From assembly GCF_002113885.1 (NCBI RefSeq), contig NW_018405252.1:302001-366000 (forward strand): a stretch of 64,000 nucleotides of DNA, written 5' to 3'. This DNA comes from Mizuhopecten yessoensis. Its lineage: Eukaryota. The notes beneath the pieces are model-generated. The model had not been told where the DNA came from. It ran no database searches and saw nothing but the letters and a program-made list of their open reading frames with translations. Positions within the stretch are counted from its first letter, which is position 1, and the number at the start of each line of letters is the position of its first letter. Of this stretch, positions 34,293 to 58,300 are shown in pieces. The position numbers and the translations under genes were made by a program.

Positions 34293-37200
34293 ATGGAGAC
34301 AGCGAAGCCTACGAAATTTATTAGATTGCTAGCAAAGCGTTTAGTATCTAATGGTATAAACTCTTTAGATTTAGATAGACAACATATTTAATATAATTTT
34401 GTGTCGACCACTGGCTATCTGTTCACCTGTTCACAGGGTGTTGTTGACACTGTCACTGAGTATGACTTGGTTAGAAGATAGTTCGGGTCCGGGGTCGATG
34501 GGAATTTTGTATTTAATAGCAATGTCAACAAGACCTTATGACATGACCGAAATTAACAGATTCAGAATCCCTTGTCTGCAGTATTGTTCCGAGACAAAAT
34601 GTCATGGAAGCGGTAGTGGAAATTGTCCCAGAAAAGTTTGTGCTCATTGATTGACCCTTTCATTTTTCAAGAATTTTGTGATTTAAGTATACAAGAAGGT
34701 TTTTCTTGGTAGTAAATATATAACATGAAACATTAGCCCGGAAGAGCTTCTCTTATGATAGAATATATGAAAAATACCACAGTGGACAGGGAATAGATTT
34801 AACAAAAACGTGCAATAAGAAACAAAATGCACATCAAAGTTGAAACTAAAATATACATGTATATTGCTAGAAACATGCAGGAAATAACATGCTTCTAAGA
34901 CTTAAGTTATAAAGTTCCATCAAATAAAATCACACTTAACTTCTTCAGTATTTGAATTGGAAGTTCAAGTTGAAATCAAAGGAATGGGCAATATCTGTCA
35001 AATCCAGGTTTAGTACTTTTACCTCCGCCTACTTCAGAACTGATGTCAAGTCTCCTATGAAAGTTTTGGTGGTATATTTGAATTGAGATGGGATTGAGGT
35101 TCAAAGGATGTTGTAAATTCTGGACATGGGGAGATTCCTAAGAGAATGTTATGAAGCTGTAGTTGTGTGATCTGTGATTAAACTTTTGTTAATGTTAATC
35201 GGTGGTCGGGTGGTGCAGTGGATAGATAGCACATTCACCTTTCACCAAGGTATGGGGTCACCTGCCCGACCACGTGGGTTTTCTCTGGGTACTCCGGTTT
35301 CCTCCCACATTTGGACCCTACGCACGTTTACATCTGGGCTAACAAGAATGATTAATATAAGTTGAAATAACATGATTGTTGTAAAATAAATATAGTTTTA
35401 TTTAACTGTATTCTTTACATAATTTTAACCTGCATTGAATTAAAAACCATTTCTTTCCAGGCTGTGTGAAAGACACCCACAACCTTAAGCCAAGAAGACT
35501 ACTGAAGGAAGCTGTAGCTAGCTTACCAGAAGGAACTATAAAAGATACTGTTAACAAAAGATTTGGATTTTATGTAAAGAAATTGAAATTGTAAGCTCTT
35601 TTGTAACATTGAATATACATATTACCTTGAATTTTAAGAAACAGTGGCTAAATTTACCGTGCCACAATCTTTCAGAAGAATTGTGATTAAAATTGAACTT
35701 TGAAGTCATAAAATTTCAAGTTTATTGATATGAAAAGATTTACACAATACTATGTATTTAACAGGGTCAAATGTAATGTCTACAAAAAATGTGTAATTAA
35801 TTTACATCACATGGTTTGCTGAATGACCTAGCTTTTAATTCACTTATGAAGTAGCATAAACGGAAAATGATCGTAATAGCAGAAGGAGCATGCAAAACTT
35901 TGACAAGGAAAATTTTGTCATTTTAAAGGGGCCCATTGGGCATGATAGACATGCAAATCTTCATTTTTTTTTACAGAACGTAAGAAATAAACTTTTATTC
36001 CTTTTTGTTTTATATCTTTTACATGTTTCACACCCAAGTGTGGTGTAATGGAAAGAATACCTTTTGCTATGTAAGAAAAACAAGAAATGTAAGTTTTATC
36101 CTGCTGATAAGAAAAAAGAGCAAACATTAATGGCAAAATGCAAGGTATCTTTTTTGTATATTTGATCTAATAATTTGAAATTTGCTTCTAAGGCAATTTT
36201 TGGATGTTGTGTAAGCATGGTCTACATTTCTCTTGAAAAATGTACAACCAAGATATTTTGTAAATATTTTCACATCGTTAAATTTGATGTTCTATTAACA
36301 CACTTTCACATCGTTGGTATTATGTTCTGAAATAAGAATGAGATCGTAATTTTTTTTTTTTTTTTTTTTTCAGATCTATTTTTGAGCAACATAAGAGAAA
36401 AGTTTCAGCAGAACCACATAAAAAAGACAAGTTCCCCTATAACCTGTATACAAAGAAAAAACATTGTGTCACTGGAACTATTGATGATGACCAGGTACAA
36501 CAAACATGTAAGCGTTTACTCTCAAACATAAAAAAAAATCTATAGCAACTGTGGTGATAGTATCACGCTGTTTCCAGATTTGGATAATGGTGTCTTGTTT
36601 ATGAATCTAGATTAATACCTTCACTTTTTAGCCCACTACATCAGATAGTGTGGGCTGATTAAATTGTCCTTTGTCCGTCATCCATCCTTAAACAATTCTT
36701 TTTGTTACTACTTCTCAGAAAGTACTTAAGAGATTTTGTTTTCAAATATAATACGTAGATTCCCCATCGTCCATAGTTGTGCTTGTTTCATTTTAGGACT
36801 GATTGGGAAGCAAAATGGCTACCAGGCATTCATCTTGTATTTTGGAAGTTTAAGTTAATCTGTTTGTTACTGCTATTTCTCAAGAAGTACTTGACTGACT
36901 TTTTCGAATTTCCCTATGGTCCATAGTTGTTGATGTTTCATTTTGGGACTGATTGGGAAGACAAAATTATTGCCAGTCAGCCATCTTGGATTTTGACAGT
37001 TCAAGTTTGTTATCGCTATTTCTCAAGAAAAAACAACAATGACCTTAATTTGAAAAAAAATAAAAGCCAGCTATATATGCACAGATAAAGAAAATAAGAG
37101 AAATGAAGGACAAAAATCATACTTACATAGAATGAATGAAGATTGTACAATGATTGGTGCCAACATCTCCAGGATCTCTTGTTGGGGAAATACTCAATTC

Positions 37201-40200
37201 TAGTTATCCTCTTCCAACTGCCAGTATAGGGATATTAGGAGATAATTAAGTTGCCCACTACATGATCATAAGAGATGACTAATGTGGGGCCCCATACAGG
37301 GTCTAGGGGTTTCTTAACTTAGTTTAATCTGAACGCAGGTATATCTGCCTCTATATTCCGATCATAGTCCATATTTACCTGTATTTAATCATAATAAATA
37401 ACAATGTTTTTGATGTGACGTCACTCCGATGTTGTTGTGAATCTCCTTTCATCACTTTCCCAAAATTTATCAATGCTTATTAAGATTTTAAACACCAATG
37501 TCACCGATGTCTCCACTATTACCTCTATAGAATAAGATGTGAGTTAAAGACAACGCAATCTTTCCTCGTATAAAATTCATTAATTCCTGGCAGTACAGTA
37601 ATTTAGTCGCTCTCCGTTAGACATTTCTAGTTGTTCAATATCCTGTTGTTTGTGTGGTTTCCATACACATGCTCCATACTCTAGATGGGGTCGAACTAAA
37701 GCTTTAAACAGTAGGCAGAATGATTATCCAAGTATGTATATGTTCTTCTGATGGCTCCAAGTATTCGGTTTAATCTGTGCCCTCATCATGGGTACACCAA
37801 GGGGACCAACTCATCCTGCTGCCTCGGTCATTGCAATATGTGGGACATTTTTCTATTCTCTCTTTTCTATCTTTGTGTAGTCTTCAAAGGGGTTGCTGTT
37901 CAGCAAAAAGTGATATTATTTATTTGTGACAGGATGGATGCTGTCATGTCCAGATAATGAAATTTCAGTGAAATGACACTTTAAAAATGGTCCTCAAACA
38001 GCATTATAATCTTTAGAAGCCATTATTCACATGACCTTAGCTGTTGTGAAGTTTGGAAACCTCAATCAGTCCATCACTCGATCAATTCTTTGAGTTCGAT
38101 TGTTTCCCCATGGTAGAATTGGGATATATTAAACAGACTCAAGATCACTTCAAATTGTTACTGAAATTTTGTGAAGAAGACTTGCTAAGTATGTATGTAT
38201 ACAGTAGATCATTGTTTTGTACAGATGGAACCTTGCTGTGTAGGAAGCTAGAAGAGGATCCTGTGGAAAAATTGGTTGGATTGCTAGCTGTAAGTTTTGT
38301 GTTGTGACTGTAGATATACAGACAAACTACTGGTAACAGTAAGTTGTGACAACAACAGATACTAGATAATTGTTACATGTAATTTCAGGGAGACAGATTT
38401 TCCTGTTATTTTTCTTTGTGGCCATATTTTAGCCAGTTGTCACATTAATTTGTTAATGCGCCAGTATTATTGTGATTCCAATCCACAGTATCCAGATTCT
38501 TACTTATTACTGAACAGTGAAGCTCCTGTTAATATATCGTGGGAAATACAAGGTGGAGGTAACCTAATGATTGTACTGCTTTAATTACAGAAAATTGATG
38601 AGGAGAACCAGGACTCTGTGCTACTTAACCTGACATGTGGGACCACTTCTTATCTTGGTCTTCTCAAAACGATGCATCTATACTATCTGTAAGTAGAGTT
38701 CACTCCCGTCTCCATTCTTCTTTTACCCATTTAAAAATACATACTGTATACTGGGAATTTCAGCCACAGTTTTACATTCACCTTTTTACCCAAGGTCAAA
38801 TGAGTGCAAAAGTTCAGTGAAATGGTGTACAGGCGTAACTTTTAAATTGTTGAAGACATCTTGATAAAACATGTAGTATACCTAGGTATAACTTCTGGGT
38901 TAAGCAAACTGAAACTCTTTTTGTTGAAAATACAACACCTTTGGATTGCACAAATATACATGTAATTCAACACATGATCATGAGGTGATAACATTAGCGT
39001 TGTTTTAGCTGTTTCACATGGCAATGTTAAAAAATGTTCAGCCTAAAGTTTATAGCTGTCTATGCATACATGAATTTGGAAAATATAGTATGAATTTCAT
39101 AAAAATTTAGAAAATATTCCTGGCTTTTTCCTATTCCTTGGTAGTACGAGGAATTCCAATGGAGAAGTATGTTAAATATTAAACCATCATTGACCATACA
39201 TGGAAAGAAGTAATACTTTAGCTGATATATTAGTAAATTGTTATTTTGTACTACATGTGTTTAACTCTCTTCTTCAGTATTGTTCAACCAAAGTCGGAGA
39301 ACACTATAAGAGATTATGGAGAGACGGGAAATGCAGAAGAGAGAAAAACAGATAAAAATGCCATGTAAGTAAATGTATTACAGATATGACTTTGACCTAA
39401 AACAAATTCAGTCAAATGGATAAAAATTCCTCAAAGCTGCATGTGCATTTAAATTTTGGAGGTTGAATTTCTATCCAAAATATATAAGCAGGAGAAACTG
39501 GTATTTTGTGAACAGACTGAAGGTCAGTGCCATCTTTTTATGCAAATATTCATTACACTTTTACTCTGAAATCTGACCAAGATTTATGCATAGAAAAACA
39601 CTATTTTCAACAAAAACAGGTAGTCAGATTGTGCCTGGCTTTTCACTTAGACGATCCTGGTTCAATTCCCACTCTATCTGGTCCAAAAAAACTGATTAGT
39701 TCATGACTTGTTATATAAAAGTTTAACTCACAAATTTGTTTTCATCAGGCAATATCTTCATCCTTCAGAATCAAATATTGTTTATCAAGTAAATGAAAAT
39801 AAAAAATGATTACACTGAGAGTTCTATGCAGTTTTATTTACGAGATATTCTTTGCACATGCTGTCTTTGTGAAAAGTGTTATGTATTCCCTTGTTGTCCT
39901 ATAAATGTCTTACCACAGTGACTGATTATGCATAACTTCCACATCTGAGGTATGTACATGGTTTATGCTCTTATGATTAAGGCATTCTTGCCTATTGCCA
40001 AAAAAAAAATGGAAGGGAGATCATATTTGGTGAAAAATACCAAATTTTAGTAACCCCTGATTACACTATCTGTTTTACTGAACTTGGTTTGATGTTAAGT
40101 TATTTGTTTCTTTGCAGGTGTCGTACATTATGTGATAAAGTGAAACATTTCCTGTCTGTGTGCCATCTTCGATATTCTGCCATACAAAAGGTATTATGTT

Positions 40201-43200
40201 ACACCTATTCTGTAGTAACACATTGCTAAGTACAAAGTCTACATCTATTTATCCAGTCTCGGTCCCCATCGAACCATGAAACATTGCTTCTCTAATTCTG
40301 TTTGTCCTCGGTTCCAGAGTCTAGTGTACCATAAAACATTGCCTCTGTAAAATTGTTTGTCCTCAGCCCCAGATTCAAATTATAATTTATTAGTCCATGA
40401 CCCAAGGATCCAATATAAACAGGAAAGCATTGCCACCTACAAAAGTAACCTTGTTTAACCTACTACAGCCTCAGACTCCAGTACACAACAACACAGTAAG
40501 TACAAACAATTACTTTACAATCTATCTGTCCACAGCCCGAGGCTCCAGTGTACCCGTACAGCTATTCGGATCTTCTGTCCACCATTATGGCCGTGTTTTT
40601 TGACCTGTTTCTTTTATCCAACAGGTAAGTTCTCCATCATCGAATTTCCTTTGAACAATCTAGTTTTCTTAAATTGTCTCTAAATTTGATTTAAGTACCT
40701 GTTAATTAATTTCCCTTGAAATATGTCAGTTAGAATTTTGTGATAATTCCTAATTACTAAAGTATTATCAAGATGTAATTCTTTTTAACATTAAATTATG
40801 AGTTGTATACCTGTTTACCGCCATAAGAATATGAACAGGAATGTTTCTTTGATCTTTCATAGAAAGTCAAAGAAACAGGAGCAGGCATCCAGGCGATTAT
40901 GTAATTTGGCTTGTTATCTGACGGAGGATAATCCCAGCTACCGACTGGACGTTCTAATACAGATGTCGAAGGTTCACACCGACACTGCCCTACTACTGCC
41001 CTATGTCAGGTATGTACCCTTGTCTGACGTAAGTTCTGGAGTAAAACCTTGTGTGCTGTTAGGGGTGGGCTCAACTCCTGGTGTCAGAGATTACCCGTGT
41101 TAGATCCCAAGGTTTTACGGTAGTTGGATAGAAAATGTTTATAAAGAATCATCCCAATTTGAAAGCATCCGTTGTCTGTGTCAAATTAAATGTAATATGT
41201 TTGTATGTGAAATAAAACAACAATACAGAGCAGTCGGAGAAATACCTTTGGGAATTGTCGAAGAAACTTTTGTGTTTAAAAAAGGGTAAATGAAAGACAT
41301 AGTGACCTAATCAAAATTGGTCCTGCGAGTATACCCAAGGATTCATGTATAATATGATATACATATGTAGTATTATTGATCCAGTAATTATTTGAGTTAT
41401 TGCTCTTTGTGTATTTAGTAAAACTGGAGTCTTGGCCCTTGAAACTTTAAATTTCTGCTCTGTGACTCTAACTTAACCGTTTGTTGGATATTTTGTAATC
41501 TGGCGTAGTGAAAGTACGTCATATGTAGATATGCATGAAGAAAGGAATTTGCGATTCAACTATCTTTCACTGAGTTATGGCCCTTGAAACTTAATTTCTG
41601 TTCCAGAAACTTTGCAAGTGCATCTCCTCCTTAACTGTTGGTTGCATAAAGGAAGGGATTTGTGATTTGAATATTATATCCCCTGCAAACAAAGTTTGAG
41701 GTGGTGTACTATATACAAATCACCTTGTCCATCCGTCTGTCTGTCTGTCTGTCTGTCTGTCTTAGTAGGGATATTTCTTTGTAAGTGTTCAAATTTTCTA
41801 TAGTTGTATTTAGTTTAAATAAGTTTTCATCAGCAGGTGCTACTTGTTTTAGTGGTACCCTAATTTACCTTTGTATCAGTTTATAATGTAGTTCCAGAAG
41901 ATGCTTTTACCAGCTTTTAGCAATGATGACAGGGTTTGTCATTTCTTGTTCTGATCAGCTAGATATAATTATATGTCAGTTTTCCCCCTACCTCTTTCAT
42001 GATTAGTTCTGGTTAAGTGATTTTACAGTATTCCGTGTTGGTGGGCAACTCATGATCACTACTACTAAAATACTTGTGTTATTTGTGTGTTTTGAGGAAG
42101 CTCTCTACAATTGAACTGTTTGTGTGATATTGTGTGGGTTAGTTAGATTATTCAGTACCTGTGCAGTATTGTGTTTAGATAGTTTACCTGGTACTAAGTA
42201 TCATGATGAGCTTATATGGTGTTGCTTTTTCCATCATCCATCAACATTTGCTGCAAACAACCTCTTCTCTCTACTGAGCTGATTTCAGCTGAACTGTACT
42301 AGTATCATGCTAGCCCATATGGATCAGAACTTAACAAATAAAGCAGCTGACTCTCCTAGGATCTGAATGTTGGGGTCAAAGGATGTCAGACCAACATATT
42401 TACATGCAATGACGTCTCCTCCCGACTTACTGGGCAGGTTTTAACCATCAATTATTCCTATTAGGAGTCTCTTTACTGTGTGTTGGTAGGAGAAGCTTTG
42501 AGAAGAAGCCAGATACTGGTGACTTCCACCACTACCTGAAATATGTGTTGGCCCTGCGCACTGTCTGTGACATCACTGATGAAAAGGACGAATCTGGTGA
42601 AATCAACACTCTGAAGCGACAGGCAAGTTTTTGTCATATCTGGCAATGATATCTGTTCTTATAGCTTGTAAATTTGTTAAATTCTTCATAGTGTAATAAT
42701 CAAAATACCAGTCCTCAAGAGTAACAAAATATCTTATCGTTCTACAGACCAGTAAGACTGTACCCGCCCCCAAACATTTCCTGGATTGGTTGGAGGAGAT
42801 TAATGAGGACATCCTTGATGAAATGCCGGTGGAAGACAGGCGCTTCAAGAGATCACAGGTCACCAAGTTCATCCTGGAGGAGGCAGATGATAAGCTGTTG
42901 TCTCTGCTGGCTGATGTAAGTACATATTACACGTCCTTCTCGTTTTCAGGCAACCAAGTATCCATTCTTGATTTGTCACTTTCATTTTTTGTAGCTGTTG
43001 GGCTAGAATTAAATTAGAAAAAACTGTGTTCTCAACACTGACACATAGATAATCTGTTATCCTGTACGATAATAAAGTATCCTGAATGGTTTGGTATCTC
43101 GTATGATATTCAGGTATTCTGGTGTCCTACACAATAAGTCGGTACTCCATGTGATGATTTGGTAACCTGCTCGGTAATCTGGTAACCTGTACACTAATCT

Positions 43201-46200
43201 GGTTACCTGTACACTAATCTGATAACCTGTACACTAATCTGGTAACCTGCTCTGTAATCTGGTAACCTGTACACTAATCTGGTAACCTGTACACTAATCT
43301 GGTAACCTAAATGACAATCTGGTATCCTATGAGATTGTCTGGTACCTGTTCGGTGATCTGACATTATTAACATTCATTAGTATTATAAAAAATGAAATAA
43401 AATAAATCATCTCTAACTTCTATTTCAGCTGATGTTGTTTTCAATATAGATTTTTATTCACAAAGAGACTAGTTGAAAACCCGAGGGGTCAGAATCGAAT
43501 GATCCAGCAGAATATCCTGTATTCCTATTTAGCAGAAACACCATTCAATTTCAGCTGTCTTAATTAACCTGACCTCAGGGCTCAACGTTAAGTTCAGAGT
43601 GTTGTTTCTTGATGTGCTGTGAAACTCCAACAATGAAACATGTACTGGAGAGAATAACTTGAAAGATATTTTGCTACCTTGTTTCATCTATTCTGAAATT
43701 ACTCATAACATGTTTCAGACGTTGACAAATGGCAATGAGGAGACGGAGGATCAAGTTTCAAAAAAGAAAAAGAAGGCCACAAAGAAGAACAAAAAAACAG
43801 ATGAAGAATCCAAAGAGGTAAAAAAATGACAGAAATTTATGTCAGAAAGGCTGCTATTCCGTCTTTTCATATTGCAGAGTTATCCGCTCTTGTGAGAAGG
43901 TATTGATTGTTACGTCATTTGTTTGTGAGAGTAACGTCATCAATTTTTGAGAAAACAACGTAATTTTCTTACACAAACCAATGACATAACAATCAATACC
44001 TGCTCACAAGAGAAGATATCTCTGCAATACGCAAAGACGGAATATATAATACACTGTAGTAGGTCACCAGTCAGATGTCAAATACTACTGTATATTGGGA
44101 ACACCAGTCATATGTCAAATACATGTACTACTGTATATCGGGAAAGTTTCACCTTTTTCGTCCTCCTTAATTAGGGCGAATTTATCATTACAGCAAACTT
44201 TCGTATGAGTAGCAATTAAATGTGAAGGGTGAATACAATATTGGGCGAAAATAGATTTTACAGTTGAAGGGCAAAAATTTGACTGGGCGAAAATTTACAT
44301 GGTATACAGTATAACTGTAGCACTAGCGTATTAATGTTTCCTAAACAGCCCTTGATATGACATAGTGTCGCATAATTAAACTGTTGGTAGACCCAAGTGT
44401 AGCGATATTGGTTATTTATTTGTATTGATTGTGTTTAAAAAGCCAATCATGTTAATCTCATTGCCACAATGCAAAATGTTTTACAGGTCTTTGAGGGTAA
44501 ATCTGAGGGTAATATCTAAATCTACAAATCTTAAAAGTAACAAGAATCAGGATAAAAGTAAAGATATTAACTTATGGTTTAAAGAAACAAATGTGAAATA
44601 CTTACTAAAAATGGACACTAACTAGTCAGTCAAAAGTAAGAAAGAAGAAAGAATTTCGACTTTAGTAAAAATAGAAAATCAGCCATGTAAAACTGGTGAT
44701 AATGTTGGCAAGCCCTACAGATCCAGTGTACCTCATGTTGATATCAATCTTCAGAAATGACACAAGCACTCTATGGTTGTTTTATAGATGGCAGAGGAAG
44801 ATGGCACACCAGACTCTGAGCTGTTCTTCTTAGACACTGGTGGCAATAACGAGGTAAGGTTACTCTGACTGATAAACCTACAGAATTAACATTAGTGTCC
44901 GTCACCATGACTGACGATCTAAACACGGATGTTGTCATTATATATGAAGTGTATATCACTGTATTCTGTTCACTACAGTTTGGATCAGGTCAATGTATGG
45001 TACCCTCAAAGCACGCTCCTAGTCTTGATCTAAAACAGTGAATAGATTAGGTAATAGATGCTGGCCCCAAGCACCTGTTGTTAAGATTGGTCTTTGTAAA
45101 TGACACAAGGTCTGTGTGGTTATTTTGTAGATGACTGAGCAAGAAAACCTTTCGGACTCTGAGCTATTCTTCCTAGACACAGGTCGCAGTAAGAAGGTAA
45201 GGATTGTTTCCCTAACTGAGAATCTTTAACTTCAATTATTGTTAGTTTCGGTCAACATCAAGGCAAATTATAGTTGTTATTGAGCAAACACAACAAGTCG
45301 TAGAGGGTATATAGGGATCTGCTAATACATACATTATGTGTCCTTAATGATGCTATCTCTCTATAGACTTTTCCTATCCAATTGCCATGAAATTTCTTGA
45401 ACAAAGGTTCGATTTGGCACTTTGGGGTCAAAAACAAGGTCACTGTTGCTATAAATAGAATTTTGGTGCCATTGCTCTACAGACTTAATTTCATTTCTGC
45501 TTGTCATGGAACTTTGATGTAATGTTCACGAAAGTCTTTTCTTATACATGTTTCATGTTAACAACATAAGGTGATCAACAAGGTCACTGTTACTTTAAAT
45601 AGAATCTTGGCATCTTGGCATATTTGTGAAATAGCACAGTGGATAGCACACCCGCCTTTCACCAAGACAGCCGGGGCTTTATTCTCCAATCAGACATGAA
45701 ATTGGATCATCTGCCCGACCCCGTGGGTTTTCTGGGGCTATGCTGGTTTCCTCCCACATTAAGACCCTCTGTGTACTTCCATCTGGGCCTACAAGAGTGA
45801 ATAATATAAGTTATAGAAACTTGTTTCATAACTGTTGTAAAATATATACAGTTTATATTATTGCGAAATGTAGGAACAAGTCAATTGTAGAAAGTGTGTC
45901 TCTCAACACATCCTTTCCAGGTCATTGTTATTGAAATGTCAAATCTTCATTTGTTTCATTACTTAAGGATCGAGATACAAAAATGGAGAATCAAGTTCTG
46001 CAAAAGAAGGTTAAGGCATCAAAAACGAAAAAGAAAGAACCCAAGGAGGTAAATACATGACCTTAAGTATGAACCGTTATAATGTAAAATATTAACGGTA
46101 CTAATATTTGCATAATTTCAATGTGTTGCTTTATTTATACAACTGATTTTGTCTTTAGTAATGACTTATATCAAACTGTTCAAAATGATTTGATGATAAT

Positions 46201-49200
46201 AACCATATTGACAGATATCAAATGATGAACTATTACTAAATTTACTGTCGCACAACACATTTAATACCCTCATTTCAAAGGTCAAATCACTATTATTTCT
46301 TTATTGATGCTATCAGGCTCCTGCTACAGAAACAGAGGATCAAGTTGTAAAGAAGAAGAAGAAAAAGGCAAAGAAGGAAAAGAAAGAATTAAAAGAGGTA
46401 AAACCCTGGCATAGAGATAATATCAGGAGGGCTGTCACAGTTCAGTATTACCACACTTGTTATCTCCTTGCATCAAAGTCGTGGAGGGATGTAGAGTTCT
46501 GTTTATACCGTGAGGCACGGTAGTCTAGTGGTAGGACGCTGGGCTCATGACTGAAGGGTTGTGGGTTCGAGTCATGTCATGGCACTGTGTTGTATACTTG
46601 GACAAGATACTTTACTCCGCTTGTTCCAGTCTACTCAGCTGTACGTGGTTGGGCAGTGCTAGAATTGTAGAATGCTAGCTGTGAGCGCCGAAATGGCAGC
46701 ACCGGCTGTATGCTCCCCATGGAGTTGAGAAAGATATTGGCTGGTTGCAAAGCCCCTAGAAACACGGATAATAATTTTTAAACCGCTTTGAGACGACCTA
46801 CGAACTAGGTTGTGATAAAGCGGTATATAAGAACCACCAATTATACATTAATACCTGTAGTCACTTATTGTGATAAAGCGATACATAAGAACCTCCAATT
46901 ATACATTAATACCTGTTTTCACTTGTTGTGATAAAGCGGTACCTAAGAACCTCCAATTATACATTAATACCTGTAGCCACTCATTGTGATAAAGCGGTAC
47001 ATAAGAACCTCCAATTATACATTAATACCTGTTTTCACTTATTGTGATAAAGCGGTATATAAGAACCACCAATTATACATTAATGCCTGTAGTCACTTAT
47101 TGTGATAAAGCGGTACATAAGAACCTCCAATTATACATTAATACCTGTTTTCACTTATTGTGATAAAGCGGTATATAAGAACCACCAATTACACATTAAT
47201 ATCTGTATTCACTTGTTGTGATAAAGCGGTATATAAGAACCTCCAATTATACATTAATACCTGTTTTCACTTATTGTGATAAAGCGGTACATAAGAACCT
47301 CCAATTATACATTAATACCTGTTTTCACTTATTGTGATAAAGCGGTACATAAGAACCTCCAATTATACATTAATACCTGTAGTCACTTATTGTGATAAAG
47401 CGGTATATAAGAACCTCCAATTATACATTAATACCTGTAGTCACTTATTGTGATAAAGCAGTACATAACCTCGAATTATACATTAATACCTGTAGTCACT
47501 TATTGTGATAAAGCGGTATATAAGAACCACCAATTATACATTAATACCTGTAGTCACTTGTTGTGATAAAGCGGTACCTAAGAACCTCCAATTACACATT
47601 AATACCTGTAGTCACTTATTGTGATAAAGCGGTACATAAGAACCTCCAATTATACATTAATACCTGTAGTCACTTATTGTCTTCACTCCAGGGACTTTAT
47701 TCGATTAAATCCAAAGATGCAAGCCAATGATTTTTTCTGAAGCCCAAGTTGAGGCAAATGTAAATGTGTTAGGAATTTGTTAAAGAAAATAGAAATGTGT
47801 ACATATGCAATTATATTTATACACGTCTTTGTAATAACTTCTAGTAGCTAAATAGTGTCACTAGAACTGTCATTACCTTCACTTCACAGCTAAATAGTGT
47901 CACTAGAACTGTCATTACCTTCACTTTACAGCTAAATAGTGTCACTAGAGCTGTCATTACCTTCACTTCACAGCTAAATAGTGTCACTAGAACTGTCATT
48001 ACCTTCACTTCACAGCTAAATAGTGTCACTAGAACTGTCATTACCTTCACTTCACAGCTAAATAGTGTCACTAGAACTGTCATTACCTTCACTTCACAGC
48101 TAAATAGTGTCACTAGAACTGTCATTACCTTCACTTCACAGCTAAATAGTGTCACTAGAACTGTCATTACCTTCACTTCACAGCTAAATAGTGTCACTAG
48201 AACTGTCATTACCTTCACTTCACAGCTAAATAGTGTCACTAGAACTGTCATTACCTTCACTTCACAGCTAAATAGTGTCACTAGAACTGTCATTACCTTC
48301 ACTTCACAGCTAAATAGTGTCACTAGAACTGTCATTACCTTCACTTCACAGCTAAATAGTGTCACTAGAACTGTCATTACCTTCACTTCAATGTTATTAC
48401 AAAGTCAAACCACTACACTGTATTTTCACTACTTCAGGATCAAGTTACAAAAACAGAGGATCAAGATACAAAAACAGAGGATCCAGTTTCAAAAACAGAG
48501 GATCCAGTTTCAAAAAAGAAAAAGAAGAAGAAGAAACAAAAAGAGTCAAAAGAGGTAAATACATGAGATTGCATTCATATTAACCCCAAATTGATGTGAA
48601 ATGACTTGTTTAGGGGGTCTATTTGAATAGTATCTGTACTGTCAACTTCAATACCAGGTGAAATGGCCTACTATAAACTCAACAATACCTTGTCAGGGTC
48701 AAAGTTTAACTGTATTACAATGAAGAATTTGTACTGAGGTAAAAACAGTCTCAACAGTGTTGTGTAGACAGGCCCTATGGAACTGTCTGTGAAAATGACT
48801 CCTCCTAAATAGTTGTCTTTGGAACCGACACAAACTGCATGGTTATTTTGTAGGCAATTGAGCTAGAAGAAAGACAAGACTCTCAGCTGTTCTTCCTAGA
48901 CACTGTTGGCGGTAAACAGAAACAGGTAGGCATGGTTACCATCTAATCTGAACCCAGAGTATATTAGTATTGATTGTTACCATGACTTGTACTCTTAATC
49001 AGATATTTTTATCATTAGCTCACCTGGTATGTCTGTCCATCTAGCTTGATATCCTGAGTAAAATCAACTGATCACCTTGGCTCACATTCAAAGTCACATG
49101 TCAAATATGTAAAGCAATTCAAATAATTTCTTTAAGAACCACAAGGCATGGGGACATTCTGAAGAACAAAATAGTCAGTGAGTCCATATTTGTGCTGTAG

Positions 49201-52200
49201 CTTGATGGGGAGAATTTTTGATCTGATAAATGACCTTGACCCAATTAAAATTTATAATTATCAAATATGAGAGAAAATTGAGTAAGTCATCTTAAGAACC
49301 ACAAGGCCTGATGAAATGACATTTCGTCTCTAGCTTCCTGGATTAAACCGCTTTCAAGTTCAAGTTTATTCAAATAAACCTCCAGTTCTTTGACTCACTT
49401 TCAAGGTCATAGTGATCAAATGTGTGAGATATTTCTAATGACATCTTCTGAAAGTTAATAGGCCTTTTGTGTATGGTTACACTAGCTAACAATATACAGA
49501 TAAAGTATTGTCATGTTATGTGTTGTTTGGTGTTTAATCTACTGCTTAACAGTCAATGACCTAATGTAGACCTTAGCTACCAAAACTATCCGAAGATAAT
49601 CTGATGTTTAGGTAATATTTTACTGACATAAATTTATGAACAGTTACTAGACATTGTGTCACACAGAACATTCAGTACCATCACTTAAAGTCATTGTTAC
49701 TTAAGAATGTTTTCTTTTTCAGGATCAAGATACAAAACCAGAGGGTCAAGTTCCTAAAAAGAAAGATAAATCTGCAAAGAAGAAAAAGAAGGAATCCAAA
49801 GAGGTAAATTTGAGATCAATGATGAAAACTTTGTTTCACTTTGTCCAAACCATGTTCTTATTGCTTGAAACACTGTAATACAACATCCATAAATGTTACA
49901 TCTAATTTTGTTGTTGTGAAGATATTCAAAACTCTCAAAAACATTAAGTAGTTACCATGTTTTACCAGAGCTAATCCCATGCTTTGATTTTGACTCCTGA
50001 AACTATCTGCTGCAAAACATTGTTAAGTCATCATTAGAAATGACGCAAAAAATGTTATTGTTTTATAGGCAACAAACATAGCAGATGAGAATCAGGAGAC
50101 TGAGGTGTTCTTCATAGACACAGGTGGGAGCTGGCATAAACAGGTAGGATTCTATCTCGCATGACACTGCACTGCATTAGTGTCTGATATATTAAGTAGT
50201 TATTTCCTATCCCATCCTATCAACCAGAGACCTCCAAATCAATTCCAGGCCAGATCCTACACACATGACCAGTTCTTCAAAACTCATGCAGATTTGTTAT
50301 AAATAAATATCCATTTCTTATAATAGCCTGTAGGGTGAATTTCCTATTTTTTGAAGGACCCATTAATAAAGAGTTATTTGATAAATGAATATTTGAAATG
50401 CTGTTTATATGTTTTGTAATTTATTAACATTAAAATATATTGTATTGGTCACCATGATTTTTTTTCTTTAGCTAAGGTGTACATTTTAAAGCCAGCACTA
50501 ACTAAAACATGGCAGAAAACCTTGTCTCCAAACTATTAACTCATTCACCCCTGAAGACACATTTGAACTCTTCCAATTCAAAGGTTGGAATAGTTCATTA
50601 TGAAATTTCAGGGGTGAATGAGTTAAAGACGTTTCAACTTTTATTTTGTTGACTTAAAACAAATAATGATTGCCTTCTATGATGATTAACATGTTAACCC
50701 TCACAGAAGTCCATACTTGTATTGTGTACTATAGACTGGTCAGTCACCTTTTATTATGGACTTCCATTATCAAATATTCATTTTATGTGATCTTTCAGGA
50801 TGACATTGACATTGAAGATAAAGAAGAGAGTGATGACTCCATAACAATAACCGATGTCACATTCGTCGAACAGACAGTAATATCCAGTGATAACGAGGTA
50901 AATTTAAATTCAAGTCTTGATATATGGTGGGTTAAGAGAGGGGAACTTTGTGCTGAATGAATGTTGATGCATGTTTAGTAGCTCAAGAGAGGAAACACTT
51001 TATGTTGTAGGGTCGAAGCTCATGAGAGATAAACTTATTGTTAAAAATTGATGTAGGTGGCTCAGGGGTTAAATTTAGGTTGAAGTGTAGAAACAAGAAA
51101 TGAAAGCCAACATACCATTGTATGACATAGAACATAGGTCTGTGTATCAATTTTAGTATTATTTTCTTTATGGTGGTATTCTACTCCCATAACATGAGAG
51201 GCCGCTGGTCGGCCTTTTTTCAATCGGATGTGATTTTGCCGACTGCGACCTCTCATTTCCGAAGCACTAATTCTTTGATGCAGTTTCCACCCGAAATCCG
51301 GGCGGAACAAAATCGGCTTGAAAAACTCACATAAGTGGTTAACAGTTCATGACAACGATGTCTACTCACGGTTTATATAATATAGATCTCATATATATGT
51401 CACAGACACAAATATATAGTATATTACGGAATAGAACACTCAAAATACATGTCCATGTCGTTGTAGCACATCTCTGACCTACATTTAAAACATGGCTTCT
51501 GGATTAATACAAAATATCAGGGGGGATTTCAAACGGAACGAAATGATACGGAGTTTGTTTGTATTCCGCTTGTGAAACATTACATGTAATCCATTTTTGT
51601 ATTAACCGGAAAAATCATGGCAAATGCTGTCTGCTTCGCTTCGAGTGAGGAAAAACTCATTATTTATGTCTTTGACATGAAATTTTTCTCATATAATCAT
51701 GGATTTATGGAAAGGAATATTTATTGGACCCTTTTGACCATTTAAATGTATGTAAACACGATATAATCTTTCTTAATCCGAACTTTGAAAATGTGATAGT
51801 CAGCATCGGGAAAATCAGCTATGGGCAGTTAGAGGTTACGCGGCGCCTGTCAAAAGTTTTTCGCCGTGTAAAACCTCAACATTGTTGGAGTAGATGGTAT
51901 TCCAACATTTTCACAACATAATGCAATAAAAGACATTGTTGAAAGCACAAATTGTTCATTCTTTTTTGGGATTTTGTGTGCCTTTGAGATTCTCCATACT
52001 TCTTTCTTTTTCTTCTATAAAAACGAAAAAGAAACTTTTTTGTTCAATAATGAGAACTAAGAAATAATAATGGTACAGATATGAACACATTTTCAATTGT
52101 CATAAGCATTTGTTAATGGTGTTTTTTGTCTAATGTTACATTGAATGTCTTAATATCTCTCTATAGGTTTTGTGTCTTCATATTTTTGGGCCAGAACTTG

Positions 52201-55200
52201 TTTATCATTAACAAAGAATTAACGATTATAAATACTTCACCTAAGGATCAATCTAATGCTAATAGTATTATAAATACTTCACCTAAGGATCAATCTAATG
52301 CTAAAAGTATCATAAATACTTCACCTAAGGATCAATCTAATGCTAAAAGTATCGTCGACCCGTGATTTCTAGTTATCCTGTACAATGACTTGTTTATACT
52401 TACTTTGATCAGTGATAGATACCTCTGTAAAATTCAAAGGCTTGCTTACAATTCTTGAGAAGCAAGAAGTGGTGAAGAGTATTATTAATGTAATATACAG
52501 TAAACAAAATTGTATCATATTCCTGTTACTCTTCAGGAAATTATGGCTGATGAAATGGACATACGAGACATGGAGGAGGAGGAAGACGAAGAGGAGGAGG
52601 AAGGCGAAGAGGAGGAGAAGGACATGGACGTCAAAAATGAGGATAGTGACAAGGAAAACATAGAGGAGAAAATGACAGTGAAGGAAAATCTGGAAGAAAC
52701 CACCATAAGACCAATGGACAAAGATTCTGAGGAAAAAGTTATGAACCTCAGTGAAGAAAACGGGTCGGACATTGAGGCAGATACAGAGGAAGATGTTGAT
52801 GTTAACACCGAGGATGCTGAGGATATAGATGAAGATCAAGAGGAAAATATCGAGGGATTTGATTCCGATGATTTAGTGAAACCAGATGAAACAGATGATG
52901 ATGAGTCAGACGAAGTGATTGCTGAAAGTGATGCTGAAGACAATGATGAAGTGGATAGTTTTGAAGTAAAATCTGATCATGGGCAAACAGAAGAAATGCT
53001 AGCATGTTTCGTAAATAAAAGTCCTAGAAGGGAAGATTCAGATGAAATGGAAGTTACCTTATCAACGCCTGACAAGATAGCGGAAAGCGTACCTTTACCA
53101 GAGATACCAGTATCTGGTAAGTCTACACGGCGAAGAAAGGCCGCTACAAACAGTCGGGATACATCAGATCACTCAAGTGGTGAACAACAGATGTTTACTC
53201 CTACTAGAAAACCATCTGCCAATACACCTAGGAACAGATCACCTGGGAAACAGTCCTCTGTCAATACACCTAGGAACAGAGCACCTGAGAAACAGTCCTC
53301 TGTCAAAACACCTAGGAACAGATCACCTGAGAAACAGTCCTCTGTCAATACACCTAGGAATAGATCACCTGAGAAACAGTCATCAGTCAATACACCTAGG
53401 AACAGATCAGCTGAGAAACAGTCTTCTGTCAATACACCTAGGAACAGATCACCTGAGAAACAGTCCTCTGTCAATGCACCTAGGAACAGATCACCTGAGA
53501 AACAGTCCTCTGTCCAAACACCTAGGAACAGATCACCTGAGAAACAGTCCTCTGTCAATACACCTAGGAACAGATCAACTGAGAAACAGTCATCAGTTGT
53601 CAAACCTAAAAACACCTCTCCGGAGAAACGATCATCAGCTATGACGCCTCGTAGTATCTCCCCCAAGAAACGATCGTCTGTTGCCACACCTACCAATATC
53701 GCACCTGAGAAAAGATTGTTCGAGGATGTGATCGGTACCTCAGACGACCCAGACGACTATGTATTTTCACCAAGGAAACTGGGAAAAACTGATGTGCATC
53801 AGATGATTCAAGGAACTACACCTGAGAAAAAAAGAAAGATGAGAAATGGGGAAGTAACAGAGGGAGCGTCATCAGAAACAGCACCAAGGAAAAGCAGGGC
53901 AGCAACTATCAAGTCTCCTGAGAAAAGTCAGCTGAAAGATGGAGCCAACTCCCCAGGAAATTCTGAACTCAAATATGAAATTTTTGAGTTTGAATCCGAT
54001 GAGGAAATGATTATGAAAAAAATCGAAAATAGGCAGAATGCTGAATCTGATCGACAGAAGTCTCCCAATACTAAATCTAACAGGCTGAATTCTCCCAAAA
54101 CTGAACCTAATAGACTGAAATCACCTAAAACTGAAGACAGATTGAAGACTCCGAAAAGTATGAAGGAAGAGAATAAGTCCACTCTGTCTGCTAAAAAATT
54201 GCAAACACCAAGGAACCAAATACAGTACAAGGACGAGGAAGAGATAGCTTCCTCATCAGATAAAGAGGAAGAAATATCGCTACATTTAAGGAGATCCACG
54301 AGGACACCAAAGAAAAGACAGATGGAGGTGTCATCATCTAGTAAACGGATCAAGACAAGAACTGTCACAAGTAACAATGTCTCCTCTTCAATGAAACAGC
54401 CAGAAGAAAGTGTAAATAATTTTGATATAACAGATGTACTATCAGGTGAAATAGGAAACGAAGTGATTCCAGATTCAAATGACTCTGAAAATGAAAGTCC
54501 ATGTGAAGAGGACTTTCCCTTGTTGAGTTCCCCTGTTAAAGAAAGTCACCAGGTGCCTTCAAGTTTTAATAAAACCCTTCATACAAAACAGACTGAACGG
54601 ACAGAAGTATATATTGACACTCAAAGTCCAGCAAAATCCAAGAAGACTTTATCTAAGACCCCTACTGAGAAATTCACGTCTGTTAAATCTCTCAATTTAC
54701 AACCTTCTCCTGGAATCGTTGATCAGCCTTCTCCTACTAAAGGTCAGTCCAACAGGAGGAAGGCTCGCTCCAGTACTAGTGTTGTCTCCAATTCAGTAAG
54801 CAATGGGGTTGATTCTGCAGTGTTGGCGCTTACCACAGAAAACCTAGCAGCAATGGCATCTCCAGGAAAACGATACTCCTTGAGGGCTACCAGGAAACGC
54901 AGGGAATCGGGGACTTCAGATGTTAGTGACCTTTCCTTAGTGACACGGTCGAGGAAAAGTGTTTCTGGATATGTGGACTCTACGTTGGAAAGTTCAAAAA
55001 AATATTCAATGACAGGAAATGATGAGTCCAACTCTGTCAGTGGCTCACCTGACAGAACTCAAGGTCGCTCAAGGTTGCAGACATTGGACGAGAACTCTTC
55101 TAATTTGATGATGGTCACAGACAAAAACTTCATCTTCTCAGAGAAGGTAAGGACATGGTGTGGGATGTTTTGTTTTATTTTGGTTATTAAACCTGTAACC

Positions 55201-55356
55201 TGTTTAATATCTTGTAATTTCCCAATATATGTTATACACACATTATATGAAGATGTCACAGTTTATTTACATAGTTGTTGCCTTTTGTAAGAATACAGAC
55301 TTGTTTAGAAAGGTAGCAAGTTCCTTTTAACTTTTTTGTTCGGGCATTTTGAAGAA

Positions 55357-55397
<41 letters not shown>

Positions 55398-58300
55398 TGT
55401 ACTTGTATGTGTAGATGGTTGAAGGCACCAGAGTTGACCTTTGACTTACAATTCTTGTTTAAAGTGTAGAAATGATAAACCTGTATAAACCAACATACAT
55501 TGTACCATATCAATGTGTCATTAATTATACTTGCAGGAAACACAGACTCCATCTTCAAGGAGGTAAGTAAGACGAGTTCATTTTAAACGAGTATATGATT
55601 AATATTCAGAATGAAATTCATCAGTTTGTTACAAATAATAAATGCTAAGTTTATTTTGAACACAAACAGTATTTGAAAACTGACTTCGCGAGCTTTTGAA
55701 AACGTCTGTTTCCTTTGTCAAGCAAAGAGAGCAAATAGCCAGTATAACAACTCTAACAGCTGACAAAGGAAGTCGACCTTTCAAATAGTCAGTATAACAA
55801 CTGTAACAGCTGACAAAGGATGTCAACCTTTCAAATAGTCAGTATAACAACTCTAACAGCTGACAAAGGATGTCAACCTTTCAAATAGCCAGTATAACAA
55901 CTCTAACAGCTGACAAGGATGTCAACCTTTCAAATAGCCAGTATAACAACTCTAACAGCTGACAAAGGATGTCAACCTTTCAAATAGTCAGTATAACAAC
56001 TCTAACAGCTGACAAAGGAAGTCAACCTTTCAAATAGTCAGTATAACAACTCTAACAGCTGACAAAGGATGTCAACCTTTCAAATAGTCAGTATAACAAC
56101 TCTAACAGCTGACAAAGGAAGTCAACCTTTCAAATAGTCAGTATAACAACTCTAACAGCTGACAAAGGATGTCAACCTTTCAAATAGTCAGTATAACAAC
56201 TCTAACAGCTGACAAAGGAAGTCAACCTTTCAAATAGTCAGTATAACAACTCTAACAGCTGACAAAGGATGTCAACCTTTCAAATAGTCAGTATAACAAC
56301 TCTAACAGCTGACAAAGGAAGTCAACCTTTCAAATAGTCAGTATAACAACTCTAACAGCTGACAAAGGATGTCAACCTTTCAAATAGTCAGTATAACAAC
56401 TCTAACAGCTGACAAAGGAAGTCAACCTTTCAAATAGTCAGTATAACAACTCTAACAGCTGACAAAGGATGTCAACCTTTCAAATAGTCAGTATAACAAC
56501 TCTAACAGCTGACAAAGGAAGTCAACCTTTCAAATAGTCAGTATAACAACTCTAACAGCTGACAAAGGATGTCAACCTTTCAAATAGTCAGTATAACAAC
56601 TCTAACAGCTGACAAAGGAAGTCAACCTTTCAAATAGTCAGTATAACAACTCTAACAGCTGACAAAGGATGTCAACCTTTCAAATAGTCAGTATAACAAC
56701 TCTAACAGCTGACAAAGGAAGTCAACCTTTCAAATAGTCAGTATAACAACTCTAACAGCTGACAAAGGATGTCAACCTTTCAAATAGTCAGTATAACAAC
56801 TCTAACAGCTGACAAAGGAAGTCAACCTTTCAAATAGTCAGTATAACAACTCTAACAGCTGACAAAGGATGTCAACCTTTCAAATAGTCAGTATAACAAC
56901 TCTAACAGCTGACAAAGGAAGTCAACCTTTCAAATAGTCAGTATAACAACTCTAACAGCTGACAAAGGATGTCAACCTTTCAAATAGTCAGTATAACAAC
57001 TCTAACAGCTGACAAAGGAAGTCAACCTTTCAAATAGTCAGTATAACAACTCTAACAGCTGACAAAGGATGTCAACCTTTCAAATAGTCAGTATAACAAC
57101 TCTAACAGCTGACAAAGGAAGTCAACCTTTCAAATAGTCAGTATAACAACTCTAACAGCTGACAAAGGATGTCAACCTTTCAAATAGTCAGTATAACAAC
57201 TCTAACAGCTGACAAAGGAAGTCAACCTTTCAAATAGTCAGTATAACAACTCTAACAGCTGACAAAGGATGTCAACCTTTCAAATAGTCAGTATAACAAC
57301 TCTAACAGCTGACAAAGGAAGTCAACCTTTCAAATAGTCAGTATAACAACTCTAACAGCTGACAAAGGATGTCAACCTTTCAAATAGTCAGTATAACAAC
57401 TCTAACAGCTGACAAAGGAAGTCAACCTTTCAAATAGTCAGTATAACAACTCTAACAGCTGACAAAGGATGTCAACCTTTCAAATAGTCAGTATAACAAC
57501 TCTAACAGCTGACAAAGGAAGTCAACCTTTCAAATAGTCAGTATAACAACTCTAACAGCTGACAAAGGATGTCAACCTTTCAAATAGTCAGTATAACAAC
57601 TCTAACAGCTGACAAAGGAAGTCAACCTTTCAAATAGTCAGTATAACAACTCTAACAGCTGACAAAGGATGTCAACCTTTCAAATAGTCAGTATAACAAC
57701 TCTAACAGCTGACAAAGGAAGTCAACCTTTCAAATAGTCAGTATAACAACTCTAACAGCTGACAAAGGATGTCAACCTTTCAAATAGTCAGTATAACAAC
57801 TCTAACAGCTGACAAAGGAAGTCAACCTTTCAAATAGTCAGTATAACAACTCTAACAGCTGACAAAGGATGTCAACCTTTCAAATAGTCAGTATAACAAC
57901 TCTAACAGCTGACAAAGGAAGTCAACCTTTCAAATAGTCAGTATAACAACTCTAACAGCTGACAAAGGATGTCAACCTTTCAAATAGTCAGTATAACAAC
58001 TCTAACAGCTGACAAAGGAAGTCAACCTTTCAAATAGTCAGTATAACAACTCTAACAGCTGACAAAGGATGTCAACCTTTCAAATAGTCAGTATAACAAC
58101 TCTAACAGCTGACAAAGGAAGTCAACCTTTCAAATAGTCAGTATAACAACTCTAACAGCTGACAAAGGATGTCAACCTTTCAAATAGTCAGTATAACAAC
58201 TCTAACAGCTGACAAAGGAAGTCAACCTTTCAAATAGTCAGTATAACAACTCTAACAGCTGACAAAGGATGTCAACCTTTCAAATAGTCAGTATAACAAC

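Follow-up and report, generated by a model that had tools for sequence, protein, structure and literature searches.

The window analyzed here, 64,000 nucleotides (nt) of contig NW_018405252.1 from the scallop Mizuhopecten yessoensis (positions 302,001 to 366,000 of the forward strand), holds zero N, has a G+C content of ~36%, and contains numerous satellites. It carries a 25-exon gene on the + strand (34293-60647) with a cassette of nine small exons, each 66-117 nt long, between positions 43719 and 50143. By direct reading and six-frame translation, these exons are of two kinds in the order A-B-B-A-A-A-B-A-B: The A exons encode Lys-rich segments, and the B exons encode acidic segments, each with a peptide that resembles the arch-interacting motif (AIM) of adaptors for the helicase MTR4. 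We lean, if only slightly, toward reading the cassette as an expanded docking region, in which each copy would be a canonical AIM that recruits MTR4 and the nuclear exosome.

The gene was found by using a 928-amino-acid (aa) open segment (52504-55287) as a query, which gave a 100% match to XP_021349874.1 (P0001; "titin-like isoform X1," 1578 aa, Mizuhopecten yessoensis); mapped back onto the window, this protein defines the 25 exons and reproduces the nine cassette exons codon for codon. The spliced product was taken from that database record, and single exons served as separate queries. The coding parts of the gene are as follows:

34293..42915, + strand: eleven exons for the ~395-aa all-helical N-domain (residues 1-395; exon mapping)
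43719-43817, + strand: exon A1, 99 nt, 33 aa, TLTNG...KKKKKATKKNKK...KE; Lys-rich linker, opening with the family-conserved xLT(D/E/N) junction
44788-44853, + strand: exon B1, 66 nt, 22 aa, MAEEDGTPDSELFFLDTGGNNE; AIM-like copy 1
45131-45196, + strand: exon B2, 66 nt, 22 aa, MTEQENLSDSELFFLDTGRSKK; AIM-like copy 2, 85% identical to B1 over 48 nt
45968-46048, + strand: exon A2, 81 nt, 27 aa; Lys-rich
46317-46397, + strand: exon A3, 81 nt, 27 aa; Lys-rich
48438-48554, + strand: exon A4, 117 nt, 39 aa; Lys-rich, with an internal 21-nt repeat
48854-48925, + strand: exon B3, 72 nt, 24 aa, AIELEERQDSQLFFLDTVGGKQKQ; AIM-like copy 3, with Gly two residues past Asp
49723-49803, + strand: exon A5, 81 nt, 27 aa; Lys-rich
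50069-50143, + strand: exon B4, 75 nt, 25 aa, ATNIADENQETEVFFIDTGGSWHKQ; divergent AIM-like copy 4, skipped in isoform X2
50799..50897, + strand: acidic 33-aa exon after the cassette (exon mapping), kept in pectinids; oyster has an acidic exon at the equivalent position
52537..55146, + strand: giant 870-aa exon; its acidic tract gives way to nine 14-aa repeats TPRNRSPEKQSSVN and, after these, to a Ser/Lys-rich disordered tail
55537-55563, 60285-60335, and 60624-60644 plus stop codon (to 60647), + strand: last three small coding exons, with the family-conserved C-terminal end RRYSLRGKD

Each of the nine cassette exons has an AG acceptor after a pyrimidine-rich tract, a GT donor, and a length divisible by three (phase 0/0), so that the skipping of any one leaves the reading frame intact. 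The initial annotation of this stretch had proposed this set of exons, their order, and four B peptides, all of which direct reading and codon mapping reproduce exactly: DSELFFLDTGG (B1), DSELFFLDTGR (B2), DSQLFFLDTVGG (B3), and ETEVFFIDTGG (B4), with the cores LFFLDTG (B1 and B2), LFFLDTVG (B3), and VFFIDTG (B4). The A exons contain 10-13 Lys/Arg apiece, with K(K/R)x(K/R) clusters, and the opening of A1 has counterparts in oyster ("ALTDR") and amphioxus ("LLTEG"). A six-frame scan of the window places four motifs on the + strand, all in B exons, and two further matches to a loose pattern on the minus strand, outside every exon of the gene model. No extra exon copies were found elsewhere in the 64-kb window by blastn.

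The protein had also been described as unrecognised and its exons as not captured, which is correct for the function only: All nine cassette exons are already annotated in the RefSeq models XP_021349874.1 and XP_021349875.1 and in GenBank OWF52142.1, an independent genome-project annotation that contains the same exons under the misnomer "Replicase polyprotein 1ab." RefSeq isoform X2 (XP_021349875.1, P0070) differs from X1 solely by the skipping of the 25 residues of exon B4, and skipping of cassette exons is thus already present in these models. The names given by annotation pipelines to members of the protein family described below are composition artefacts (titin-like, kinX-like, Replicase polyprotein 1ab, enolase-phosphatase E1-like, caldesmon-like, uro-adherence factor A-like, BOD1L1-like, "dentin sialophosphoprotein-like," and "serine/arginine repetitive matrix protein 2-like"), and the remaining members are "uncharacterized."

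The canonical AIM has the consensus LFx-phi-D(x)1-2G/P, which has been generalized as x-aromatic-xxD(x)1/2G/P (PMC6662825, PMC13542088); its Gly or Pro permits a bend in the chain. The likeness of the B peptides to AIMs on which the initial annotation was built is upheld by this comparison: B1-B3 match the canonical consensus and B4 only the relaxed one, the Gly after Asp being placed as DTG in B1, B2, and B4 and as DTVG in B3. XP_021349874.1 has four matches to the pattern [LIVMF]Fx[LIVMF]Dx(1-2)[GP] against 0.017 expected, and none of 2000 composition-preserving shuffles reached four, but the four B copies are paralogues and not independent, so their pattern of divergence is a better test than the shuffle count. 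In the crystal structure of yeast Mtr4-Nop53, Leu60 of Nop53 contacts the KOW helix alpha-B, Phe61 and Val63 occupy an apolar patch, His62 is wedged between Mtr4 Arg774 and Tyr776, Asp64 makes a bidentate salt bridge to Arg774 and Arg678, and Val65 and Gly67 pack at a bend of the chain (PMC5688999). LFFLDTGG aligns position for position with Nop53 L60-F61-H62-V63-D64-V65-x-G67. Besides the core and the spacing of G/P, the B copies share with canonical AIMs a setting predicted to be disordered and an aromatic residue and Asp that are conserved in orthologues.

A profile of 34 motif windows, compared with 177,635 distinct Protein Data Bank (PDB) sequences, ranked human NOP53 first (residues 80-96, EAPNEKLFFVDTGSKEK) at E 0.14, a value not significant by itself. 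A first rank for NOP53 is nevertheless unlikely to be chance, because few PDB sequences carry canonical AIMs. The matched segment adjoins and overlaps residues 84-123 of NOP53, the fragment used for MTR4 binding (PMC6662825). Single-exon PDB searches with B1 and B4 found no match; only the 34-window profile gave a signal.

The gene belongs to a protein family that can be followed over a wide range of animals. Comparing residues 1-440 with 1.84 billion representative proteins by phmmer, we recovered 35 proteins, the named ones among them coming from the following groups:

Bivalves: Pecten, Argopecten, Ylistrum, Potamilus, Mytilus, Dreissena, Pinctada, Saccostrea, Crassostrea
Gastropods: Babylonia, Haliotis, Lottia, Patella, Batillaria
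Others: the chiton Liolophura, the brachiopod Lingula, the annelid Lamellibrachia, the sea cucumber Apostichopus, and Branchiostoma

The N-domain of ~400 aa is common to the members and defines the family; it is followed by a disordered stretch with one to four motif copies and then by a long, highly charged tail. In the AlphaFold2 model the N-domain is all-helical (predicted local distance difference test [pLDDT] 89, predicted template-modeling score 0.72). Neither the exons of the window nor the family members have a Pfam match above noise down to E = 10, with no RNA-binding domain and no Nop53 domain among them; an N-domain profile gave zero matches to PDB sequences at E ≤ 10, and a Foldseek comparison of the N-domain model with the PDB gave only generic helical-repeat similarity (template-modeling score ≤ 0.29, E ≥ 0.027), so that no fold is assigned. 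The oyster orthologue, whose gene spans 9.8 kb, is encoded in full (1007 aa) by transcript-sized contigs of ~3.3 kb, which indicates that it is spliced and expressed. Judged by these comparisons, the family appears to be an unnamed, ancient bilaterian one without a Pfam entry and not homologous to known AIM adaptors.

All 18 full-length members examined have the core xFx-phi-D, some 20-150 aa past the N-domain, and in 15 of the 18 it is accompanied by G/P. The family motif reads acidic-(L/I/V)-F-(F/Y/M)-(I/L/V)-D-(K/T/R)-G, with one to four copies per member. Position 1 varies (L/I/V/F/T/N), positions 2 and 5 hold Phe and Asp (never Glu) without exception, and G/P follows within one to three residues in most copies. 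Together, the 18 proteins contain 24 strict matches, where 0.31 would be expected; these are non-independent events and show retention. Examples from outside the pectinids are:

Potamilus: DLFFLDTKG, DIFFLDTKG
Mytilus: NFFIDTG, DLFYIDKGG, EIFHIDTS
Pinctada: IFFIDKG, VFFIDKG
Crassostrea: ELFFIDKGKP
Babylonia: LFMIDRGG, VFFIDRG
Chiton Liolophura: LFYVDKKG
Lingula: TFFVDTT
Lamellibrachia: LFFIDKE, LFFIDKK
Apostichopus: LFFVDKS
Amphioxus: LFFVDTS

Three of 648 columns are invariant in a 19-sequence alignment that runs from the N-terminus through the first motif and spans at least five phyla, and two of the three are F441 and D444 of the motif. In a 1000-residue alignment, "LFFxDK" is the sole consensus to emerge past the N-domain, and when the scallop tail is compared window by window with 14 distant members, the motif windows rank top once poly-E and poly-K runs are set aside. 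Aligning orthologues had been suggested as a check of the motif; it is conserved across phyla, and both oyster and amphioxus have a single-copy motif exon. The family-invariant Phe and Asp are the very residues that define AIMs, as the mutations used elsewhere show: F186A and D189R in the test of NVL (PMC6662825), D492R in DNTTIP2 (PMC13542088), and Asp64 in Nop53 (PMC5688999). An AlphaFold2 model made with the 19-sequence alignment gives residues 401-480 (A1, B1, and B2) a pLDDT of 34-40, with no strand and no docking on the protein's own domain, so the motifs are predicted to be exposed; B3 and B4 share the same charged cassette.

Comparison of the four B exons with each other shows that the motif has been held back from change while its surroundings have not. 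The proportions of synonymous (pS) and non-synonymous (pN) differences are as follows, the numbers being small, the pairs non-independent, and the core only six codons long:

Core, six codons xFFxDT: pS 0.35, pN 0.07, pN/pS 0.21
Upstream flank: pS 0.43, pN 0.44, pN/pS 1.03
Downstream flank: pS 0.43, pN 0.41, pN/pS 0.94

The earlier statement that the core is retained and the flanks have drifted is therefore confirmed: At similar pS (0.35-0.43), pN/pS is 0.21 in the core and ~1 in the flanks. Core codons have drifted silently (Leu as CTG, CTA, and TTA; Thr as ACT and ACA). These data support purifying selection on the B-exon motif among the paralogues.

The array of the scallop arose by tandem duplication of symmetric A and B exons together with their acceptor regions. 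A DNA alignment of the B exons and their flanks shows that each is preceded by a conserved intron stretch of ~40 nt, from which it follows that the duplicated unit was an exon plus its acceptor region:

44748..44787, + strand: stretch before B1, ..AAATGACACAAG..TGGTT.TTTT.TAG
45091-45130, 48814-48853, and 50029-50068, + strand: equivalents before B2, B3, and B4

The last N-domain exon, which encodes 56 aa in scallop and 55 aa in both oyster and amphioxus and is in phase 0/0 in all three, gives a common reference point. What follows it differs among the three species and among pectinids:

Amphioxus: one 47-aa phase-0 exon, LLTEG...DTDLFFVDTTKDGDTAVQ (L002 10568-10708)
Oyster: a short "ALTDR.." exon, one motif exon (..APQELFFIDKGKPK, L001 8118-8240), then the acidic exon and the giant exon
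Scallop: five exons of A type ("TLTNG..poly-K") and four motif exons of B type
Pecten maximus: three LFFLDT(G/V) copies plus EVYVIDT
Argopecten irradians: two copies (LFFLDIG, LFFLDKG) plus EVFVIDT
Ylistrum balloti: three copies plus a doubled EVYIIDT exon

The proposal of multiplication by exon duplication is thus borne out for the motif by the single motif exon of oyster and amphioxus, the shared intron flanks, and the variation in pectinid copy number, but the multiplication is not special to this scallop, since other members carry two or three copies; several copies seem to be a family tendency that has gone furthest in scallops. At residues ~440-485 of the Ylistrum balloti protein (XP_060064707.1), the 23-aa ATTKPGENEETEVYIIDTTQICQ stands twice in tandem, through a very recent duplication of an exon or else as an artefact of assembly or annotation. 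Within exon A4, a 21-nt repeat (48436-48516, 3.9 copies) encodes KTEDQ/PV(T/S) three times, showing that duplication acts within an exon too. The B4 type is a distinct, older subtype and, being without G/P outside Mizuhopecten, the least certain AIM of the four.

MTR4 adaptors known to bear AIMs are Nop53/NOP53, Utp18, Air2, NVL, ZCCHC8, NRDE2, and DNTTIP2. The closest in motif is NOP53/Nop53, the 60S assembly factor and founding canonical AIM adaptor, in which EAPNEKLFFVDTGSKEK (80-96) is near-identical to DSELFFLDTGG of the scallop and has similar flanks; in both proteins the motif lies in a disordered segment, is preceded by acidic residues, and is followed by Gly. NOP53, however, carries a single AIM close to the N-terminus and binds pre-60S particles through its C-terminal region, whereas the scallop family has a novel helical N-domain, one to four AIM-like copies, and a long tail. 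We rejected the possibility that the scallop protein is a NOP53 orthologue, given this different architecture and the absence of the Nop53 Pfam domain. DNTTIP2, a 90S pre-ribosome factor with a metazoan-specific AIM (LFVID), likewise carries a canonical AIM inside a long, disordered, lineage-specific extension, and its binding depends on the AIM Asp and on MTR4 R658/R743 (PMC13542088); it differs in having a single copy and a C-terminal Fcf2 domain anchor, which the scallop family lacks, and there is no sequence relationship. A precedent for several arch contacts from one adaptor is ZCCHC8, the scaffold of NEXT, which has more than one arch-interacting motif (C-AIM and I-AIM; PMC6662825). The two motifs of ZCCHC8 differ in kind and bind adjacent, non-identical KOW surfaces of one MTR4, whereas the scallop copies repeat one canonical type and would be expected to compete for one and the same site; a zinc knuckle and a C-terminal helicase-binding domain further set ZCCHC8 apart. 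NRDE2 (SFRTDKKP) has a peptide of the AIM subfamily ending in D-K-x-P/G, comparable to FFIDKG in many members of the scallop family (PMC6662825), and it exemplifies an AIM protein that can sequester MTR4 and not recruit it (PMC6499326). Unlike the scallop protein, with which it is non-homologous, NRDE2 contains HAT repeats and relies on a larger interacting domain to form a 1:1 complex.

Several observations weigh against recruitment of MTR4 by the cassette, in addition to the modest E value of the NOP53 match. A look-alike of LFx-phi-D in NVL is not a real AIM and does not bind MTR4 (PMC6662825), so that a fit in sequence is not proof. The G/P after Asp is missing in Lingula, amphioxus, and one transcript-derived member (P0012), in some extra copies, and in the B4 orthologues of Pecten (EVYVIDTT) and Argopecten (EVFVIDTS). 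The selection test covers six codons only, and the N-domain is without a known function that would define a substrate. An exhaustive single-sequence scan of the 1.84 billion representatives found no homologues in vertebrates, insects, or nematodes, the groups in which MTR4 adaptors have been studied. Two word-indexed profile searches, of which one gave only Branchiostoma and the other nothing, both missed known members of suitable length and are hence uninformative on vertebrates. Finally, B1-B3 also satisfy the expression for a clathrin box, L-phi-x-phi-[DE].

This last point leads to the strongest of the alternatives, that the peptide is a short linear motif for another partner, such as the clathrin heavy-chain N-terminal domain, SUMO, VAP, or another beta-strand-binding domain, and the array a set of several such sites. 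Conservation across phyla shows that the motif is functional and is silent on the identity of the partner, and the acidic residues and Ser before the core are as found in many SUMO-interacting and FFAT motifs. We nonetheless think a different partner rather unlikely, since the pattern of invariance in the family fits an AIM better than any of these. The clathrin box in its ELM form requires Leu at position 1, takes Asp or Glu at position 5, and belongs to cytoplasmic adaptors, and although LFFLD satisfies that expression, position 1 of the family motif is L/I/V/F/T/N, position 5 is always Asp, Phe 2 is invariant, and G/P follows. SUMO-interacting cores have the form psi-psi-x-psi or psi-x-psi-psi, where psi is V/I/L; LFFL and VFFI are aromatic at both central positions. 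FFAT motifs, E-F-F-D-A-x-E, have Asp directly after the second aromatic and then a small residue, whereas in every copy here a hydrophobic residue separates FF from D. The Lys-rich neighbors, which resemble nuclear localization signals (NLS), favor a nuclear protein, and the NOP53 AIM is the only top-ranked PDB look-alike that lies in a disordered region.

A second alternative is that the motif binds the family's own N-domain, in cis (autoinhibition) or in trans (self-assembly), with extra copies driving oligomerization. Domain and motif do occur together in every full-length member at a fairly constant short distance (~20-150 residues). The model, however, leaves residues 401-480 undocked, and the motif resembles a peptide that acts by beta-strand addition, whereas the N-domain is all-helical; such a role seems improbable to us. 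Intramolecular docking as the main explanation was rejected, because the AlphaFold2 model of the N-domain with A1, B1, and B2 shows none.

The weakest alternative, that the cassette consists of recently duplicated low-complexity spacers without specific function whose shared core reflects recent ancestry or gene conversion, could draw on the paralogy of the exons (four non-independent matches), the few codons in the selection test, and the free variation of copy number in pectinids, but is very improbable and largely refuted by the cross-phylum conservation, since the core has been kept over hundreds of millions of years in surroundings that are unalignable and has a pS (0.35) as high as that of its flanks with non-synonymous divergence six times lower.

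Returning to recruitment of MTR4, we suggest that these proteins likely form a new family of adaptors of AIM type, whose multivalent array is lineage-specific. Each motif copy would add a beta-strand to the KOW domain of MTR4, the invariant Phe entering the apolar patch and the invariant Asp forming salt bridges with two conserved arginines of the KOW domain, in the manner of Nop53, NOP53, and DNTTIP2. MTR4 and the nuclear exosome would then be brought to a target bound by the N-domain or tail of the protein, which, alternatively, might act as a sequestering regulator similar to NRDE2. Canonical AIMs compete for one site on MTR4, and binding of the NOP53 type is comparatively weak, the W-AIM of NVL being an order of magnitude tighter (PMC6662825). 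Because of this competition for a single, weak-affinity site, four copies on a flexible chain would raise occupancy by rebinding or load several MTR4 molecules, and alternative splicing could set the number of copies. The Lys-rich A exons may serve in nuclear or nucleolar targeting or in non-specific contacts with RNA; their K(K/R)x(K/R) clusters are NLS-like and are the sole indication of a nuclear location.

A fuller scenario, which we offer tentatively and regard as somewhat doubtful when taken whole, is that this new family of MTR4/exosome adaptors dates from the protostome-deuterostome ancestor, that its hallmarks are a new helical N-domain and a canonical AIM housed in a symmetric mini-exon of its own, and that this exon was multiplied in scallops into the first natural tandem array of canonical AIMs, adjusted by exon skipping, which would load several MTR4 molecules or act as a sponge (a negative regulator in the manner of NRDE2). 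A literature string search for LFFVDT, LFFLDT, LFFIDK, LFFVDK, and LFFIDT found no paper. To our knowledge, a tandem array of up to four copies of canonical AIM type has not been described before. Few MTR4 arch adaptors are known. According to the literature, AIMs are hard to find by sequence, and more MTR4 adaptors must exist (PMC6662825, PMC13542088). Human LAS2 is reported to bind the MTR4 arch through residues 487-533 without a recognizable AIM (PMC13542088). By its size and the position of its binding site LAS2 might be a vertebrate relative, which we offer as a lead and not as a claim.

The tails of the family contain further short features. The repeats of the giant exon, encoded by nine tandem 42-nt units (53215-53591), have a SPEK site in each TPRNRSPEKQSSVN copy and are degenerate or missing in Pecten and Argopecten. 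SPEK is a minimal consensus of the cyclin-dependent kinase type, and its recurrence suggests phospho-regulation of the tail. The C-terminal (K/R)(K/R)YSLR(K/G)K is found in many lophotrochozoan members (P0001, P0003-P0005, P0008, P0009, P0018, and others), and pectinids have an internal KRYSLRATRKRRESG as well; this second conserved short motif may be a basic anchor or a site for a basophilic kinase. A third small island, (I/V)(F/Y)(D/E)(F/Y)xS(D/E), occurs in pectinid and Lingula tails and in one transcript-derived tail, for instance as EIFEFESDEE, VYDFTSDVE, or DIFEYSSESD (~1150-1170 in P0001; also P0002, P0003, P0014, and P0018).

Other features of the window and of related loci lie around or within the gene:

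16929-29049, - strand: SETD1-like histone methyltransferase gene, upstream of and head-to-head with the gene described here; its parts are a SET open reading frame (16929-17258, Pfam SET E 3.7e-6), a weak match to N-SET (21704-22777), and a 771-aa Pro/Gln/Arg-rich exon (26734-29049)
46500-48390: 2-kb intron between A3 and A4, with a tRNA-like stretch resembling a short interspersed element (~46505-46580, not called by ARAGORN) and two satellites, 58 bp x15 (46810-47680) and 42 bp x13 (47846-48390), the latter ending 48 nt before A4
55732-58583: 50-bp satellite, 57 copies at 97% identity, occupying the greater part of the intron that precedes the final two coding exons
Branchiostoma floridae L002 6539-7819, - strand: CARD-domain gene nested on the opposite strand within the 4.3-kb intron that directly precedes the motif exon of amphioxus

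An Rfam scan of the window detected no intronic snoRNA or other RNA family, and ARAGORN detected no tRNA.

Evolution itself singles the motif out in this family: It is the only conserved island amid hundreds of disordered residues from molluscs to amphioxus. Should it not bind MTR4, it would still be a deeply conserved orphan motif. If it does, the consequence would be a whole adaptor family with an uncharacterized targeting domain and possibly a new class of exosome substrates in invertebrates. The family would also show how a docking motif, once placed in a symmetric mini-exon, is open to multiplication and to inclusion or skipping by the splicing machinery, and its members would provide a natural series of one, two, three, and four AIMs of the same type for testing how the number of sites affects recruitment of the helicase.

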